NCBI GenBank assembly: GCA_002104905.1
Contig: MCFE01000234.1
Coordinates: 57,075 to 121,074 of the forward strand
Direction: 5' to 3'
DNA from: Basidiobolus meristosporus CBS 931.73
Taxonomy: Eukaryota > Fungi > Basidiobolomycota
Length of the DNA stretch: 64,000 nucleotides
The notes under the pieces are model-generated. The model saw only the letters and a program-made list of their open reading frames with translations. It was not told where the DNA came from and did no database searches. Numbering within the stretch: the stretch's first letter is position 1; every line of letters begins with the position of its first letter. Made by a program: the position numbers and the translations under genes. This document shows positions 56,361-64,000 of this stretch, piece after piece.

Positions 56361-56603
56361 GGTTAGAGGGGAGACAGTCACCAACAGGTGAAATCTTTAT
56401 TTCAGCTCAAAAAAAGAAGCCAGCACTACTGTTGTAGCATTCATACAAGAGTGTGTAGCTGAGGGGAGTTTGTAGTTAGGTTAATGAGAAGGGATGATAG
56501 TTCTTCAGTGCTCAAGACACTGTTCAGTGGGAAGGGGAGTATAAAGAGGGGTAGGAATGATATGTGAACAACATAAATTCAGGGAATATGTCAAGGATTG
56601 ATG
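56361..56603 (-). mobile_element. Telomeric LINE family A, ~240-bp 3' fragment
   Basis: Collinear with 58777-59020, with more substitutions than the longer copy. Confidence 0.85.
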
Positions 56604-56750
56604 CTTAGGGGAGGGAAAGTCACCAAGGTAGGTGAAATCTTAGGGTGTAGGTGTTATAGTAAGGGCTAGGAAAAGGTTAGAAGAGCAGGGGGTCTGGGGG
56701 ATGCAGTCCCCTAGAGAATAAAAAAGCAGGGGTTTTGGGGGATGCAATCC
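56604..56750 (-). mobile_element. Short 3'-end module followed by a G-rich degenerate tract
   Basis: CTTAGGGGAGGGAAAGTCACCAAGGTAGGTGAAATCT, then tagggtgtagg/aagggctagg words and a duplicated gcagggg..gggggatgca unit. Confidence 0.6.
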
Positions 56751-58370
56751 TTAGGGGGGAGACGGTCACCAACAGGTGAAATCTTTATTTCAGTTGAAAC
56801 AAAGAAGCCAGCGTTACTGTTTTAGCTTTGATACAAGAATGTGTAGCTGAGGGGAATTTTAGGTAAGTTAATAAGAAGTGATGATAACTCTTCAGTGCTC
56901 AAGACACTGCTCAGTGGGAAGGGGGGTAGCAAGAGAGGTAAGAATGACTTGTGAATAACATTAATGAGGGGAATGTGATAAGGATTGATATTCATCATAA
57001 AGGGAGTGTGCTACTCCAGATATTGCTGCCAAAGGTCTGTCAAGTACTTCAGGTAGGCCAGCTTGGGTTTTTCTGACTGCAGAATATAGTGAGCAAACTT
57101 CTTGACTTCAGGATCTCCAAGTATAGTTCTCCAGCAGGAGCCAGGTGTAGTGTGGTGTGTTCTCTTCCAGGCCTTAATCAGTGGGTTGTTGCAGTTGTGA
57201 AGTCTGAGATATAATATGGTTCTGCGGTAGAGAAGTCTGATCTTATAGGGCATAAACCCAAAAGCACCAAGAATAGCATATCTGTAGGGGCATTCAGGCA
57301 GATGAGGCACTAAGGAGGTAATGCGCCATATGGCAAACTTGTCAAGCTTAGTGCAGTCTCTAGAAGTAAGAGAGAGAAGTGGTAAGCCAAATTCCAGGAC
57401 AGGGAAGACAAACTGCTTAAGTAGAAGGAGGCAGCTGGGAGCTGAAGTTGTAGGAGGAGTAACAGCCAGTAGCTTGTGGAGTGCCTATCTTGCCAGGATA
57501 ATTCTCTTCTTCAGGTGTGCTCCAGAGTCTAGTCCAGAGGGAAGGAAAGGAAAGCCAAGATATCTAGCAGAAGCCTGAGCAGGTAGAGTGGAGTTCTCCA
57601 AGTTGATAGGAGAGCCCAAAGGTACTGTCTTTGCAATGCAAAGCTGGAGATTATTCTTCTGCAGATACTGGTGGATGGTCTGGGAGTCTTGTTGCACATT
57701 GGAGGAGGATATTCTGATGTCATCAGCAAAAAGAGTAAGCAGGCAGTCAGCTGAGAGTCTTGGGAAATCATTCAGGAAGATGGCAAACAGTATAGGACCA
57801 AGCACAGAGCCTTGAACCACTCCATTAGGAACTGAGGAACACTGGTGATTGCTCACTTGGGTGCAGAATTCTTGCTTGTGGATCCAGAAACAGAGACCTG
57901 ACAAGGAGGGTGAGAGAGGTACTGGAGAAGCATTGCAACTTGAACCAAAGCAGATTTCTGTCAACTGAATCAAAGGCCTTAGTAATATCAAACAGAACAG
58001 AGTGATACTTGCACTGGAGAGAGTGATCTTGGCTAAGTATGACTGCATATTCCAAGGAGAGGCCAGGAACAAAGCCAAACTGTGCAGGGTGATACTTGAG
58101 GGAGTCAGAGTAGAGCTCCTGAGCAAGCAGAAGCTCAAACACCTTTCTGCAGGTGGGCAGCAGAGATGTTGGCCTGTAGGAGCTAGGATCCAGGTGCTTT
58201 CCTTTACCCTTGTACAGTGGCAGAACATTTGCAAAGGACCATTCCTCAGGAGTAGAAAGCTTGGCTGAGCATTGCTGAAACAGTGGAAGCAGAAGTGCAG
58301 ACATGGCCTTGGTACTAGTTGTCAGAAGCTCATAGGAGATTGTGTCCACACCTGGGGCAGTAGAGTTGGG
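56751..58370 (-). mobile_element. Telomeric LINE family A, 5'-truncated ~1.6-kb copy with frameshifted RT
   Basis: Near-identical to 58777-60397. A frameshift near 57840 splits the RT. Confidence 0.92.
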
Positions 58371-58769
58371 GTTAGGGTTGGGTTAGGGGAGGGAAAAGTC
58401 ACCAAGTTGGTGAAATCTTTATTTGAGTTAAGAACTAATCCAAGTACAAATAAAGAAGCCAATTAAGAGGTCTAGAACCTCTCTAATAAGTAATCTAATC
58501 TATGTTTTGTTTCATCTCTAATGTTTGTTTCAATAAAGTAAAGCTCATCAGGGGTAAATATAAAATTCAGGGGTTTTGGGGGAAGTACAAATTGCAGATG
58601 TTTCTGATCAATATAATCCAAGACTGGAACCCAGCCTGGGATTAGGTGTAGTAGGAAAGGTGTGTGGACTTGTAAGTAGCTCTGCCACATAGATCTTAGA
58701 TGGCCCTGAGCCAGTAGTCTTGGTTTCTCAGCTTTTTGAAGTTTTGAAGCAAGCTCTGTTACTACAGCA
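58371..58769 (-). mobile_element. Telomeric LINE family B, ~400-bp 3' fragment
   Basis: The open frame AEKPRLLAQGHLRSMWQSYLQVHTPF..LPPKPLN aligns with family A SEKPKLAYLKYLTDLWQQYLQQHTPF..LPPFPLN. Same 3' hairpin. Confidence 0.8.
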
Positions 58770-58840
58770 CTTAGGGTTAGGGGGGGAGACAGTCACCAAC
58801 AGGTGAAATCTTTATTTCAGTTGAAACAAAGAAGCCAGCG

Positions 58841-61609
58841 CTACTGTTGTAGCTTTGATACAAGAGTGTGTAGCTGAGGGGAATTTGTAGGTAAGTTAAT
58901 AAGAAGTGATGATAGTTCTTCAGTGCTCAAGACACTGTTCAGTGGGAAGGGGGGTAGCAAGAGAGGTAAGAATGACTTGTGAACAACATTAATGAGGGGA
59001 ATGTGATAAGGATTGATATTCATCATAAAGGGAGTGTGCTGCTGCAGATATTGCTGCCAAAGGTCTGTCAAGTACTTCAGGTAGGCCAGCTTGGGTTTTT
59101 CTGACTGCAGAATATAGTGAGCAAACTTCTTGACTTCAGGATCTCCAAGTATAGTTCTCCAGCAGGAGCCAGGTGTTGTGTGGTGTGTTCTCTTCCAGTC
59201 CTTAATCAGTGGGTTGTTACAGTTGTGAAGTCTGAGGTATAATCTGGTTCTAAGGTAGAGAAGTCTGATCTTATAGGGCATAAACCCAAAAGCACCAAGA
59301 ATAGCATGTCTGTAGGGGCATTCAGGCAAATGAGGCACCAAGGAGGTAATGCACCATACTGCAAACTTGTCAAGCTTAGTGCAGTCTCTAGAAGTAAGAG
59401 AGAGAAGTGGTAAGCCAAATTCCAGGACAGGGAAGACAAACTGCTTGAGTAGAAGGAGGCAGCTGGGAGCTGAAGTTGTAGGAGGAGTAACAGCCAGTAG
59501 CTTGTGGAGTGCCTGTCTTGCCAGGATAATTCTCTTCTTCAGGTGTGCTCCAGAGTCTAGTCCAGTAGGAAGGAAAGGAAAGCCAAGATATGTAGCAGAA
59601 ACCTGAGCAGGTAGAGTGGAGTTCTCCAAGTTGATGGGAAAGCCCAAAGGTACTGTCTTTGCAATGGAAAGCTGGAGATTATTCTTCTGCAGATACTGGT
59701 GGATGGTCTGGGAGTCTTGTTGCACATTGGAGGAGGATATTCTGATGTCATCAGCAAAGAGAGTAACCAGGCAGTCAGCTGAGAGTCTTGGGAAATCATT
59801 CAGGAAGATGGCAAACAGTATAGGACCAAGCACAGAGCCTTGAACCACTCCATTAGGAACTGAGAACACAGCTGATTGCTCACTTGGGTGCAGAATTCTT
59901 GCTTGTGGATCCAGAAACAGAGACCTGACAAGGAGGGTGAGAGAGGTACTGGAGAAGCATTGCAACTTGGACCAAAGCAGATTTCTGTCAACTGAATCAA
60001 AGGCCTTAGTAATATCAAACAGAACAGAGGGATACTTGCACTGGAGAGAGTGATCTTGGCTAAGTATGACTGCATATTCCAAGGAGAGGCCAGGAACAAA
60101 GCCAAACTGTGCAGGATGAAAATGAAGGGAGTCAGAGTAGAGCTCCTGAGCAAGCAGAAGCTCAAACACCTTTCTGCAGGTGGGCAGCAGAGATATTGGC
60201 CTGTAGGAGCTAGGATCCAGGTGCTTTCCTTTACCCTTGTACAGTGGCAGAACATTTGCAAAGGACCATTCCTCAGGAGTAGAAAGCTGGGCTGAGCATT
60301 GCTGAAACAGTGGAAGCAGAAGTGCAGACATGGCCTTGGTACTAGTCTTCAGAAGCTCATAGGAGATTGTGTCCACACCTGGAGCAGTAGAGTTGGGAAG
60401 CCTCTTGAGCACATTATGGATTCTCCTTTGATCAAGTGCAAGTGGGATGGGCAGAGTCTTGAAGTCAGGATGAAAGCCAGGAGTTGAGTACTGCTTTGTA
60501 GAGAAGAAGATGTTAGCCAGCTGTTCTGTTGAAGGTAACTTCCTGGAAGAGGGCCTCATTGCCCTGTAGAGTCTTGATACTGTTCTTGTTATAGAGTTGG
60601 AAGATTGCAGAGGCAAGGAACTCATAATATGATCCCGGAGCTGAGTATGCAGAGTGTGGTGAATTGCCTTGGAGTGGTGTATTGCTGTCAGGAGGAGTTT
60701 CTCTGTTTTTGGGTTAGGGAAGCTCAGGTAGCTTTGTTGCAGGGCTGAAACAATGGATTCCCATTTTCTTGAGGTAACAGCAGTAGTCTTGCATGGCAGT
60801 GAGAGGGAGGCAGACACCAGAATCAGATGCTTCACAAAGAGCCAGGCAAAGTTGAGATCATCTGGCAGAGAAAGTAGCAAACTGGCAAGCTTCAAGTAGT
60901 TCCCAAAGTCTTTCTTCTGATTCTTGGTAGCTTTGTGGGTGAGCACAGTAAGTTTTGGCAGCTTCTTCTTCACAACTGGTTGCATAGAAAGGGACCAGGC
61001 TGGGTGGTCAGAGGCTCTCAAGGATCCTAGCTCAGCTCCAGAGAATTGCTTAACTTCATTCACAAAGTAGAGGGCAGCAGCAGAAGGGCAGATCCAGTCA
61101 ACACATCTTTTCTCAGATTGAGCACCTAGTGCTAGCAGGTGGCTTTCTCTCAGGAAGTTCAGTAGGAATGTAGACCTTGGCTTCATTCTTGCAGTCAGAG
61201 TAGTCTTGTTCTCAGGATGGGGAATGTTGAGATCTCCAAGCAAGATAACAGGTGTTGATATAGATTGTTGGTATTGCTGAACCTTCTGGCATATAACTTG
61301 CACTTCCTGAAGGGCTAGACTTGGAGGCAGATAGCAGAGCACCAGACTGATAGTTGGCAACTGGAGAGCAGCACAGTAAGGGGAGTAAAGAGGAACACAG
61401 AGCTGAGGAGTATTGATGGTAGAAGAGATGAAGCAGATAGAGGAGGTATTCTTTGTTCTAGGAGTAGAAAAGCAATATAGATTAGTCAAAAGTATAGAGG
61501 GTAGCTGGACATCAATCAAACACAGGAGGGAAAATCTTGAAAGAAGTCTCTCTAGAGTTGGTCTTGATGGCTGTATGCTGTTGCAGTTAAGCAACAGAAC
61601 TTCAGGTAG
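58841..61609 (-). CDS. ORF2: APE endonuclease plus reverse transcriptase, no AUG start
   Basis: APE motifs LLLNCNS, CYLPP, LGDLN, VDWI, SDH. RT motifs APGVD, YRPISLL, QFGF, FDITKAFDSV, GVVQGSVLGP, LFADD, YLG. No RNase H or C-terminal CCHC recognised. Confidence 0.95.
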   Translation of the reverse strand, partial: LPEVLLLNCNSIQPSRPTLERLLSRFSLLCLIDVQLPSILLTNLYCFSTPRTKNTSSICFISSTINTPQLCVPLYSPYCAALQLPTISLVLCYLPPSLALQEVQVICQKVQQYQQSISTPVILLGDLNIPHPENKTTLTARMKPRSTFLLNFLRESHLLALGAQSEKRCVDWICPSAAALYFVNEVKQFSGAELGSLRASDHPAWSLSMQPVVKKKLPKLTVLTHKATKNQKKDFGNYLKLASLLLSLPDDLNFAWLFVKHLILVSASLSLPCKTTAVTSRKWESIVSALQQSYLSFPNPKTEKLLLTAIHHSKAIHHTLHTQLRDHIMSSLPLQSSNSITRTVSRLYRAMRPSSRKLPSTEQLANIFFSTKQYSTPGFHPDFKTLPIPLALDQRRIHNVLKRLPNSTAPGVDTISYELLKTSTKAMSALLLPLFQQCSAQLSTPEEWSFANVLPLYKGKGKHLDPSSYRPISLLPTCRKVFELLLAQELYSDSLHFHPAQFGFVPGLSLEYAVILSQDHSLQCKYPSVLFDITKAFDSVDRNLLWSKLQCFSSTSLTLLVRSLFLDPQARILHPSEQSAVFSVPNGVVQGSVLGPILFAIFLNDFPRLSADCLVTLFADDIRISSSNVQQDSQTIHQYLQKNNLQLSIAKTVPLGFPINLENSTLPAQVSATYLGFPFLPTGLDSGAHLKKRIILARQALHKLLAVTPPTTSAPSCLLLLKQFVFPVLEFGLPLLSLTSRDCTKLDKFAVWCITSLVPHLPECPYRHAILGAFGFMPYKIRLLYLRTRLYLRLHNCNNPLIKDWKRTHHTTPGSCWRTILGDPEVKKFAHYILQSEKPKLAYLKYLTDLWQQYLQQHTPFMMNINPYHIPLINVVHKSFLPLLLPPFPLNSVLSTEELSSLLINLPTNSPQLHTLVSKLQQ

Positions 61610-63145
61610 TCAGGCAGAGGTTGTAGCTTCTTCAGAGGCAGCATTAACAATGTGACCTGCAGAGTCCCAGAGCTCTTCAAATGGTGCATCACTTAAGTCA
61701 GCAAGGAGGGAAATGGCATGGTTCTTGAGGAAGTATGCCACATCATAGGAGGGGGCTTGTCTCTTGATGGCAGCAAAGAAAGACAGAATGGCAACATGGG
61801 CTGGAGGCTTGTTGAACAGTAGAGAGTCAGAGGATTCTGATTCTTCAGGCACTATCTTGAAGTCAGTTTTCAGCCAGTTAAGGTTCTTCTCCACAAAGGC
61901 AACAAATGGGTCAGCAATGTTTTGGTCTAGGATAACCTCCAGAATCTTCCCTTTTCTCCAGGCCAGGTTGACAATTCTTGAGAGCTGAATATTGCATGCC
62001 TTGAGTGCTTTCCTGATGTTGGAAATGGGGGTCCAGGGAACTTGCTTCAAGTACACCACAGTCCAGGTAGAAGCTGGTGGTAGGTTTGCTGGGGGCTTGT
62101 AAGTCCTTCTGTGTTGCAATGGAGCTGCAGTAGTCAGATTGGAGTCCACATTCTCAGTAGAAGGTTTTCTTGATGTGTCTTGCTGAATAGTACTGGAGCT
62201 GGATGTGCTGATAATTCTTGCTAGAACCTTGCCTGCATAAGTCTGAGGTATAGCTGAGGTGACTGTAGAGGTGGTGGCAGCTGGTGCAGGTGGAGAGGCA
62301 GAGACTGAAGCAGGAACTGAGGTCACCTGGGAGAAGGCAGTAGAAGCAGGTTTTCTGGGAGGAACAGAGTTCACTATCCAGTTGTTCTGTAAAACACTGG
62401 AGTAGCTTTTCTGTGGAACAGGATCTTGCTCTTGAACAGGAACAGAAGCAGGAGGCTGGGGCTGAGCAGTAGTGGTAAGGCAGTGGCACTCCAAGGAAGC
62501 TTTTTGCAAGGCATCTCTGGCAGTTTTCAGGGCAGTATTGGCTTCATTCTTGAGCTTCTTGCATTGGGCATCCAGTCTCTTGTTTTCAATAGCCAGGGCA
62601 GTATTGGCAGCCTCTAAATCAGCAATTCTCTTCTCAATTGCAAGGAATCTCTGAAGAAATGCATCAGTAGAAGTGCTGGCATCTGGGAGAGCAGTGGCAG
62701 GAATAGAGTCCATTGACAGTGGGCTTCTTGGAGGCAAGGAAAGTGGACTGGCAGATTCAGGCACAAAAGGAGATATCCTGGCAGGAGGAGAAGGAGTATC
62801 CAAGGCAGTAACAGAGGCAATTCTTGTTGGTGAAGCAGCAGCAGGGGAGGCAAGCCTGTTCAAAAACTGGGCAGGAGAGAGTGCTTGAGGAGAGGGAGTC
62901 TTCAGCTTGCCAAGCATGTCTTCCATCAGAGTGATACCAATATTCCTGGTGCATTTGCAGAGAAAAGTAAGCTTCCTGAGTCTGCCAGCTCTTCCATTCC
63001 TTCTGATAGTTCCTTTGTTTCCACAGTTGGGGCAAGAAATCTTCTTGACAGACTTGTCAAAGCAATCAAGAACCTTCCTTTCAGGTGTAGTGGGCTCCTG
63101 TTGAGGTTTTGGTGGCATATCCAGAGTTTCAGCTTCAAATTTCAT
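61610..63145 (-). CDS. ORF1 (511 aa from first ATG): zinc ribbon, Pro/Ser-rich linker, coiled coil, C-terminal RRM-like domain
   Basis: Segments CPNCGNKGTIRRNG..FLCKC; FLAIEKRIADLEAANTALAIENKRL (heptads); VVYLKQVPWTPISNIRKALKACNIQLSRIVNL. Confidence 0.85.
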   Translation of the reverse strand: MKFEAETLDMPPKPQQEPTTPERKVLDCFDKSVKKISCPNCGNKGTIRRNGRAGRLRKLTFLCKCTRNIGITLMEDMLGKLKTPSPQALSPAQFLNRLASPAAASPTRIASVTALDTPSPPARISPFVPESASPLSLPPRSPLSMDSIPATALPDASTSTDAFLQRFLAIEKRIADLEAANTALAIENKRLDAQCKKLKNEANTALKTARDALQKASLECHCLTTTAQPQPPASVPVQEQDPVPQKSYSSVLQNNWIVNSVPPRKPASTAFSQVTSVPASVSASPPAPAATTSTVTSAIPQTYAGKVLARIISTSSSSTIQQDTSRKPSTENVDSNLTTAAPLQHRRTYKPPANLPPASTWTVVYLKQVPWTPISNIRKALKACNIQLSRIVNLAWRKGKILEVILDQNIADPFVAFVEKNLNWLKTDFKIVPEESESSDSLLFNKPPAHVAILSFFAAIKRQAPSYDVAYFLKNHAISLLADLSDAPFEELWDSAGHIVNAASEEATTSA

Positions 63146-63362
63146 TTTTGAGATTTTTGGGTGATTTTTGATGGGCGGGATCAAAATTAGGGTTAGGGTT
63201 GCGCGCTGTGACTGCTTTTTACGATCGCAAGGTCAGATCCTAGGAAAAAATAAAAATAGTTAGTAAAGGTGATTTAATGGATGGATGGATGGATTCGGAG
63301 TCAGATTCAATCAAAAAATCAAATCGTTGACTAATTTAAAGAGGGTTAGGGTTAGGGTTAGG

Positions 63363-63883
63363 GGGGAGGAAAGTCACCAAGTGGTGAAATCTTTATTTAC
63401 TTATGACAAGTATCTAAAGAAGCCAAGTTAATCTGAAGTTATTCCTAGAAAGCTAGGTCTGAGAGATATCTTCCTGGTAAGCCAGGTCTGAGAGTTGAGA
63501 AGCTGAGTGGTAATATATTTCCTAGTTAGCTAGGTCTGAGAGTGGTTTCCTGGAAAGCCAGGCCTGAGAAGTGAGAATCTGAATATATCTGAGCTAAGTT
63601 ATACTGGTTTGCGGTAGCTGAATTGTGGCCGGAATGGCCAGTAGACTGGGGGAACTGAGGTGTATTTCTGGGCGATCACTGGCCAAATTTACTAGGCAAA
63701 TCTGGCCAAGTAGCATTTCAAGGATTTCAGCCAATCAGAGCCTTTACTTTGCCCGATGGTTGATCAAGCCATCTCCCAATGAGCACACATCAATTTATTA
63801 ATCAAATTTTGCTGGATCCAGGATTTGAACCCACAACCATGGGTATGGAAGGGTTAGGGATAACCACAAGGCTAAGTGTTCTT
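63363..63883 (-). mobile_element. tRNA-Gly(TCC)-derived SINE sharing the LINE 3' end
   Basis: A-box-like TAGCCTTGTGG (63874-63864), CT-TCC-A loop (anticodon 63849-63847), B box GGTTCAAATCC (63831-63821) at tRNA spacing. The ~70-nt tail is homologous to the family B 3' UTR. No ORF. Confidence 0.8.
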
Positions 63884-64000
63884 GGTTAGGGTTAGGGTTA
63901 GGGTTAGGGTTAGGGTTAGGGTTAGGGTTAGGGTTAGGGTTAGGGTTAGGTTAGGGTTAGGGTTAGGGTTAGGGTTAGGGTTAGGTTAGGGTTAGGGTTA
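63884..64000 (+). repeat. Telomeric repeat (TTAGGG)n, chromosome end
   Basis: About 19 units, G-rich strand running to the end of the window, with two TTAGG variants. Confidence 0.97.

Follow-up and report, generated by a model that had tools for sequence, protein, structure and literature searches.

The DNA analysed here (the window) is a stretch of 64,000 nucleotides of the fungus Basidiobolus meristosporus CBS 931.73 (contig MCFE01000234.1, positions 57,075 to 121,074 of the forward strand). On its minus strand, at about 58781 to 63300 of the window, lies a full-length retrotransposon without long terminal repeats (non-LTR), a long interspersed nuclear element (LINE) with two open reading frames, ORF1 and ORF2. 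The frame is open from 63184 to 58844, and the TGA at 61612-61610 is its sole interruption: the 1434 codons counted from the first ATG (63145) contain one TGA and neither TAA nor TAG. Both open reading frames of this copy are intact apart from the TGA, which bears out the statement of an earlier note, made from the letters of this DNA, that they form one frame split by a single UGA. The junction quoted in that note, ACC TCT GCC TGA CTA CCT GAA GTT CTG TTG CTT AAC TGC AAC, is found exactly in its place on the minus strand and translates as ...EEATTSA*LPEVLLLNCNS... The features of the element are as follows.

61613..63145, minus strand: ORF1, 511 codons from the first ATG
61610..61612, minus strand: TGA (UGA), the proposed readthrough site, sole stop in the 1434-codon frame, TGA in 9/9 lineages
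61607..61609, minus strand: CTA (Leu) after the stop, forming with it the UGA-CU(A) motif as given in PMC4207609
58844..61609, minus strand: ORF2, 922 codons, in the same frame as ORF1, with its terminal TAG at 58843-58841
60905..61609, minus strand: endonuclease domain of the apurinic/apyrimidinic (APE) type, ORF2 residues 1 to ~235, best Foldseek match TRAS1 endonuclease 1wdu
59576..60214, minus strand: reverse transcriptase domain, ORF2 residues 466-678, Pfam RVT_1, E 1.6e-25
61184..61186, minus strand: first in-frame ATG after the stop, ORF2 codon 142, downstream of four APE catalytic motifs
61578..61597, minus strand: 7-bp hairpin CUGUUGC/GCAACAG, 12 nt after the stop, given no support by covariation

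Relatives of the element were found by protein searches, run separately for ORF1 and ORF2, in independent public assemblies from ENA, Logan and NCBI. Close relatives are present in only a handful of these assemblies, and no more family members were found in the JGI metagenome scans. The junction was read in nine lineages: the window copy, L001, L002, L003 (with the near-identical L004 to L007), L008, L010, L011, L012 and L013. In all nine, ORF1 and ORF2 lie in one frame with one TGA at the homologous codon, as the codons on its two sides show.

Window: GCC TGA CTA
L001: GCC TGA CTA
L002: GCC TGA CTC
L003: GCC TGA CTC
L008: GCC TGA CTT
L010: GCA TGA CTA
L011: AAC TGA CTA
L012: ATC TGA CTA
L013: GCT TGA CTT

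The letters CT directly follow the TGA in 9/9 lineages, and the next letter is A in five, C in two and T in two. The residues at +2 to +4 after the stop vary between lineages. ORF1 identity drops to 34-37% among the relatives, the third codon positions of codons +1 to +40 after the stop have a mean identity of 0.35, and the pairwise synonymous divergence (dS), at 0.88 in the closest pair, has reached saturation in most. The lineages are old, with synonymous sites near saturation, and yet TGA and CT have been retained in all of them. The chance of TGA being kept throughout is ~1e-3, a rough estimate that takes ~7 deep lineages and three interchangeable stops and ignores the structure of the tree. 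At the end of ORF2, the terminal stop is TAG in four, TAA in one and TGA in none of five lineages. The ratio of nonsynonymous to synonymous divergence (dN/dS) is 0.08-0.38 in codons +1 to +40, showing that the stretch right after the stop is protein-coding in this frame. No stop-free fused protein of ~1400 amino acids was found among the close relatives, in a search whose length window admitted such proteins. The earlier note had proposed that a programmed stop would be conserved with its context across copies and that a private nonsense mutation would show itself by a sense codon in other intact copies; the first is what was found, despite the near-saturated synonymous divergence, and the second was seen in none of the nine lineages. 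The contig of L010, which is from Logan, ends in the Illumina adapter AGATCGGAAGAGCGTCGTGTAGGGA (L010:3825-3852), an assembly artefact.

The protein encoded after the stop begins almost immediately with the endonuclease. The element belongs to the APE-type LINEs by its reverse transcriptase domain, by an N-terminal APE fold with catalytic motifs, and by its many, mostly 5'-truncated copies. Besides RVT_1, Pfam gives only a weak match of ORF2 to Exo_endo_phos_2. A search of PDB sequences with the APE profile returned marginal ExoIII matches only, so that a fold search was needed. The AlphaFold model (AF2) of the first 256 ORF2 residues has a predicted local distance difference test (pLDDT) score of 79 overall and of 88 over residues 1-10, and APE strand beta-1 is formed in it by residues 3-8 after the stop. 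With this model, Foldseek finds the TRAS1 endonuclease 1wdu first (E 3.6e-10), followed by APE1, the L1 endonuclease and the R1 endonuclease 6a43; E is ~1e-9 for this set of matches. Endonuclease identity between lineages is 38-76%. N8, D33, Y93-LPP, G125-D-x-N128 (with D126/N128), RCVDW and S200-D-H are invariant in the nine lineages, and we take these residues to correspond to the named catalytic residues of L1 and APE1. APE motif II (window 61511-61513, residue 33) reads LIDV, its Asp being invariant in 9/9 lineages, whereas the L1 endonuclease and APE1 carry a catalytic Glu at this place.

In the window copy, no in-frame AUG follows the stop until codon 142. The earlier note had placed the first ORF2 Met at about 137 residues, which is not its position, and beyond the essential APE motifs, which is correct, as it lies past N8, D33, Y93 and D126/N128. 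In the other lineages the first in-frame AUG is codon 5, 2, 103, 139, 71, 59, 116 and 59; its position is not conserved, and in most lineages it lies past the essential APE motifs. Between the stop and the invariant Asn8, AUG and near-cognate codons are lacking altogether in L010, L012 and L013, and the nine lineages share no such start ahead of the first endonuclease strand. The initiation of ORF2 at CUG or UUG that the earlier note had set against readthrough thus finds no conserved codon to use. A start overlapping or closely following the ORF1 stop, as stop-start coupling requires, is not a property of the family. With neither a conventional nor a near-cognate start conserved, two possibilities are left for the ribosome: to read past the stop, or to reinitiate with no start codon. 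In the databases, the proteins P0003, P0004 and P0005 begin at internal AUGs and lack the first APE motifs. Because of the in-frame stop, the ORF2 of such elements is systematically mis-annotated from internal AUGs.

On the other side of the stop, ORF1 has a Cys-rich knuckle at the N terminus and a coiled coil, and its C-terminal domain of ~170 amino acids is conserved. No Pfam family was found in ORF1, the only matches being weak and coiled-coil-like. The C-terminal domain gives a confident model that has no significant match in the PDB, with weak ferredoxin/RRM-like rows only. The last ~10 residues of ORF1 are variable among the relatives and disordered in the structure model. This order, a conserved domain followed by a short variable and disordered tail, speaks for a fusion. 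The start common to the relatives is MPPxP, equivalent in the window to the second ATG (MPPKP at 63118); the first ATG (63145) is not conserved, and Basidiobolus ranarum has Leu at that position. By this comparison, the second ATG is probably the true start of ORF1. The length of 1434 residues that the earlier note gave for a fusion would therefore hold from the first ATG, and would become 1425 from the conserved one. One of the ORF1 homologues is annotated as coming from Basidiobolus ranarum. A solo ORF1-like gene of this species (L015:264-1073, 269 amino acids, TAA stop) adjoins a subtilase gene, has no ORF2 behind it, and may be a decayed or domesticated ORF1.

A single in-frame stop, conserved together with its context, is thus followed directly by sequence under coding constraint and by no conserved start. 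These observations suggest, with a probability that we put at about 0.7, that programmed readthrough of the UGA makes a low-abundance fusion of ORF1, endonuclease and reverse transcriptase, as the earlier note had proposed; the case is built on sequence comparison, namely on TGA and CT in 9/9 lineages, the missing start and the match to a known readthrough motif. Most ribosomes on the LINE RNA would terminate at the UGA and release the ORF1 protein, which would serve as an abundant, gag-like RNA-binding protein. A small fraction would decode the UGA by a near-cognate tRNA, UGA with CU(A) being an intrinsically weak terminator, and these ribosomes would continue in frame into the endonuclease and the reverse transcriptase. 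The product would be a fusion of ~1425-1434 residues at low stoichiometry, as in the retroviral Gag-Pol, in which the variable tail of ORF1 would act as a linker to the endonuclease. If readthrough takes place, the fusion would presumably be the active enzyme and would enter the ribonucleoprotein (RNP) through its ORF1 part.

The motif at the junction has been studied in cellular genes. Work in Ustilago maydis and HeLa cells showed UGA with CU directly behind it to suffice for efficient readthrough; UAG or UAA in place of UGA lowers it, its level depends mainly on the letters +1 and +2, and A at +3 adds to the effect (PMC4207609; Stiebler et al. 2014). The UGA-CUA of the window, which the earlier note had rightly called a documented leaky context, matches this experimentally defined motif, and the conservation pattern in the family, with UGA, C and U invariant and A the commonest letter at +3, mirrors the requirements found in that work. 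In the stop codon readthrough of human MDH1, ~4% of the molecules are extended (PMC5133446). The junction can be assigned to the UGA-CU(A) class, since UGA, C and U are present in 9/9 lineages and in a distant relative, L017, and the conserved stop and context are accompanied by coding constraint in frame downstream. An extension of ~4% resembles the ratio of retroviral Gag to Gag-Pol.

Several points weigh against readthrough. No RNA run holding the element was found in the search. The use of CTN rather than TTR at codon +1 is only weakly surprising given the Leu codon usage (p ~0.08), and selection for the Leu residue as such might account for the U at +2. A G after the CUA, which raises mammalian readthrough further, is absent. 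An AUG 2 or 5 codons after the stop is present in L001 and L008 only, and ORF2 of human L1 can start without an AUG. No RNA structure is evident: RNAalifold finds no pairs downstream of the stop in the nine lineages, and the 153 nt after the stop of the window copy fold no better than shuffled sequences (z -0.59). The stimulatory stem that the earlier note had suggested downstream therefore received no support, and neither a pseudoknot like that of murine leukaemia virus (MuLV) nor an alphavirus-type stem is in evidence on the 3' side of the stop. The UGA-CU motif, however, needs no such structure. The hairpin CUGUUGC/GCAACAG is confined to the window copy and the relatives nearest to it, among which one G-C pair has changed to A-U; as a conserved stem it was rejected, its pairing over all lineages being 73% compared with 70% for shuffled partners, a value that 63/500 shuffles reach.

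The alternative that survives best, which we consider unlikely, is normal termination at the UGA followed by AUG-independent reinitiation or coupling, so that ORF2 would be a separate protein starting at or just after the stop. LINEs are known for such routes, among them the UAAUG coupling of SART1 and the unconventional termination-reinitiation of human L1, and within the wider group of relatives one element, L016, has a stop/start overlap; the AUGs in L001 and L008 would also serve it. Such a mechanism would nevertheless have to work in a family with no conserved AUG or near-cognate codon, and in three lineages with none at all before Asn8. It predicts neither an obligatory UGA, found in 9/9 lineages here and in 0/5 at the ORF2 ends, nor CU at +1 and +2, and it requires no shared frame. 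Translation of ORF2 from a separate transcript, either 5'-truncated or internally initiated, with a non-AUG start is quite improbable: the same objections from the start codons and the context apply to it, and coding sequence runs without a break to the stop. It is harder still to believe that the UGA is decoded as sense, by selenocysteine through a selenocysteine insertion sequence (SECIS) or by a reassigned code. UGA is indeed the selenocysteine codon, and some early-diverging fungi have selenocysteine machinery. A search of Rfam with 58000-64000 at E<=1, however, gave no match, neither a SECIS nor any known recoding element, and a reassigned codon would recur, whereas the 1434 codons contain one TGA. 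A private nonsense mutation in a dead copy, whose ancestor had a single fused ORF, is refuted by the divergent lineages, 9/9 of which have TGA at this codon; the otherwise intact ORFs of the window copy also speak against it, as does the absence of any variant at 61610-61612 among those listed from the genomic contigs of this genome. Removal of the stop by splicing was rejected by inspection, as the stop is directly flanked on either side by coding sequence that is conserved, and no pair of splice sites is obvious.

Two more distant relatives help to place the proposed readthrough. In L016 (Logan SRR33696295), an ORF1 homologue and the APE-type ORF2 behind it occupy different frames, and stop and start share the letters AUGA at L016:1495-1498. 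Coupling thus exists in the wider group and looks different, which argues for the in-frame UGA being a strategy in its own right rather than the default. The ORF1 homologue of L017 (JGI metagenome 3300064003), very remote by its match to the ORF1 profile (E 1e-15), also ends in TGA CTA, beyond which the frame stays open for 83 codons to the end of the contig (L017:1608-1859). It encodes there a Ser/Pro-rich linker of ~30 residues and then ILFFNAAS and LVCIADP, in the register of APE beta-1/beta-2; on this short contig the match of the downstream stretch to the APE profile is not significant (E 0.2). Taken together, the sequences make it somewhat probable that the whole clade of telomere-specific Basidiobolus LINEs would make its endonuclease and reverse transcriptase solely as an ORF1 fusion through UGA-CU readthrough. 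The same junction may be present in the very distant sister family of L017.

The proposed mechanism can be compared to several known systems. Cellular UGA-CU(A) readthrough (PMC4207609; MDH1, PMC5133446) uses the same motif with A favoured at +3, needs no RNA structure, and works in a fungus. In the cellular genes, however, readthrough adds a short C-terminal targeting tag to an enzyme, whereas here a 922-residue enzyme would be joined to a retrotransposon protein, and readthrough would be the only route to the downstream enzyme. The Gag-Pol of the gammaretrovirus MuLV follows the same logic, with an abundant structural protein ending at a leaky stop and a rare polymerase fusion made at fixed stoichiometry. 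MuLV uses UAG and a pseudoknot 8 nt downstream. In contrast, the present element is a non-LTR element with UGA-CU, no conserved structure was found in it, and it has no protease that would separate the two parts. The LTR element Tca2 of Candida also has a stop codon between gag and pol.

Among the LINEs, SART1 and human L1 face the same problem of making ORF2 at a low level from a bicistronic RNA, and SART1 is also telomere-specific. Their solutions, with a start overlapping or following the stop, or with a spacer, need no shared frame; here there is one frame, no spacer and no conserved start. L016, with its AUGA overlap, resembles the SART1 type. The endonucleases of the site-specific LINEs TRAS1 and R1 are the best structural matches of the domain right after the stop, and the present family is also telomere-associated; the sequence identity is only ~15%, and motif II has Asp here and Glu in the others. 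We know of no use of readthrough by TRAS1 or R1. The other arrangements described are the 2A peptides of L1Tc as a route to ORF2 expression, the several stops between the ORFs of Zorro3, and an in-frame stop or a frameshift near the 5' end of RTE elements. Noma, Ohtsubo and Ohtsubo are said to have described in 2000 some Arabidopsis ATLN LINEs in which orf1 and orf2 are in frame with an amber codon between them, and to have proposed readthrough from the sequence. These are reportedly plant elements of the L1 clade with UAG and a proposed pseudoknot, as opposed to UGA-CU in a fungal telomeric LINE, and to our knowledge their readthrough has never been tested experimentally. Apart from ATLN as a possible precedent, the literature searches gave no paper in which stop codon readthrough is the route to a LINE ORF2. 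The scheme would therefore put known elements, the UGA-CU signal and the gag-pol logic, to a use that appears new in a LINE; comparison supports it, and no experimental precedent was found.

How ORF2 of a LINE is translated from a bicistronic RNA, how it is kept rare and how it stays bound in cis to its own RNA are long-standing questions. Readthrough, if true, would be a fourth mechanism beside the reinitiation of L1, the UAAUG coupling of SART1 and the 2A peptides of L1Tc, and retroelements would have converged on readthrough independently. It would fix the ratio of ORF1 to ORF2 and would physically tether the reverse transcriptase to the ORF1 RNP, which would provide for cis preference. At ~6 nt the signal is short, and reporters in fungal and human cells have already shown it to work.

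The surroundings of the element also contain copies of it. In the window, 5'-truncated copies of the same LINE are arranged head-to-tail at 56361-58370: the segment 56754-58370 matches 58781-60397 at 96.9% identity, and a shorter 3' fragment occupies 56361-56602. In the genomic contigs, the copy number is very large, the summed depth at the 5' end is ~10-fold below that at the 3' end, and joints to telomere repeats occur. There are also many truncation joints with short telomere-like fillers (TTA, CTTAGGGTTA). The 3' end of the window copy (58781-58840) has AATAAA followed by a GATTWCACC...GGTG hairpin, and after a C run come CCCTAA repeats. The same order is found in the relatives at L002:4441-4512, L003:5444-5665 and L008:4221-4636, often with another element directly behind. 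As these relatives come from other assemblies, the shared 3' end indicates that the association with telomeres is family-wide. In the 5' untranslated region of the window copy, at about 63200-63215 and ~55 nt upstream of the first ATG, there is the telomere-repeat-like AACCCTAACCCTAA. Further upstream lies CATCCATCCATCC, which in the relatives comes after telomere repeats at element junctions.

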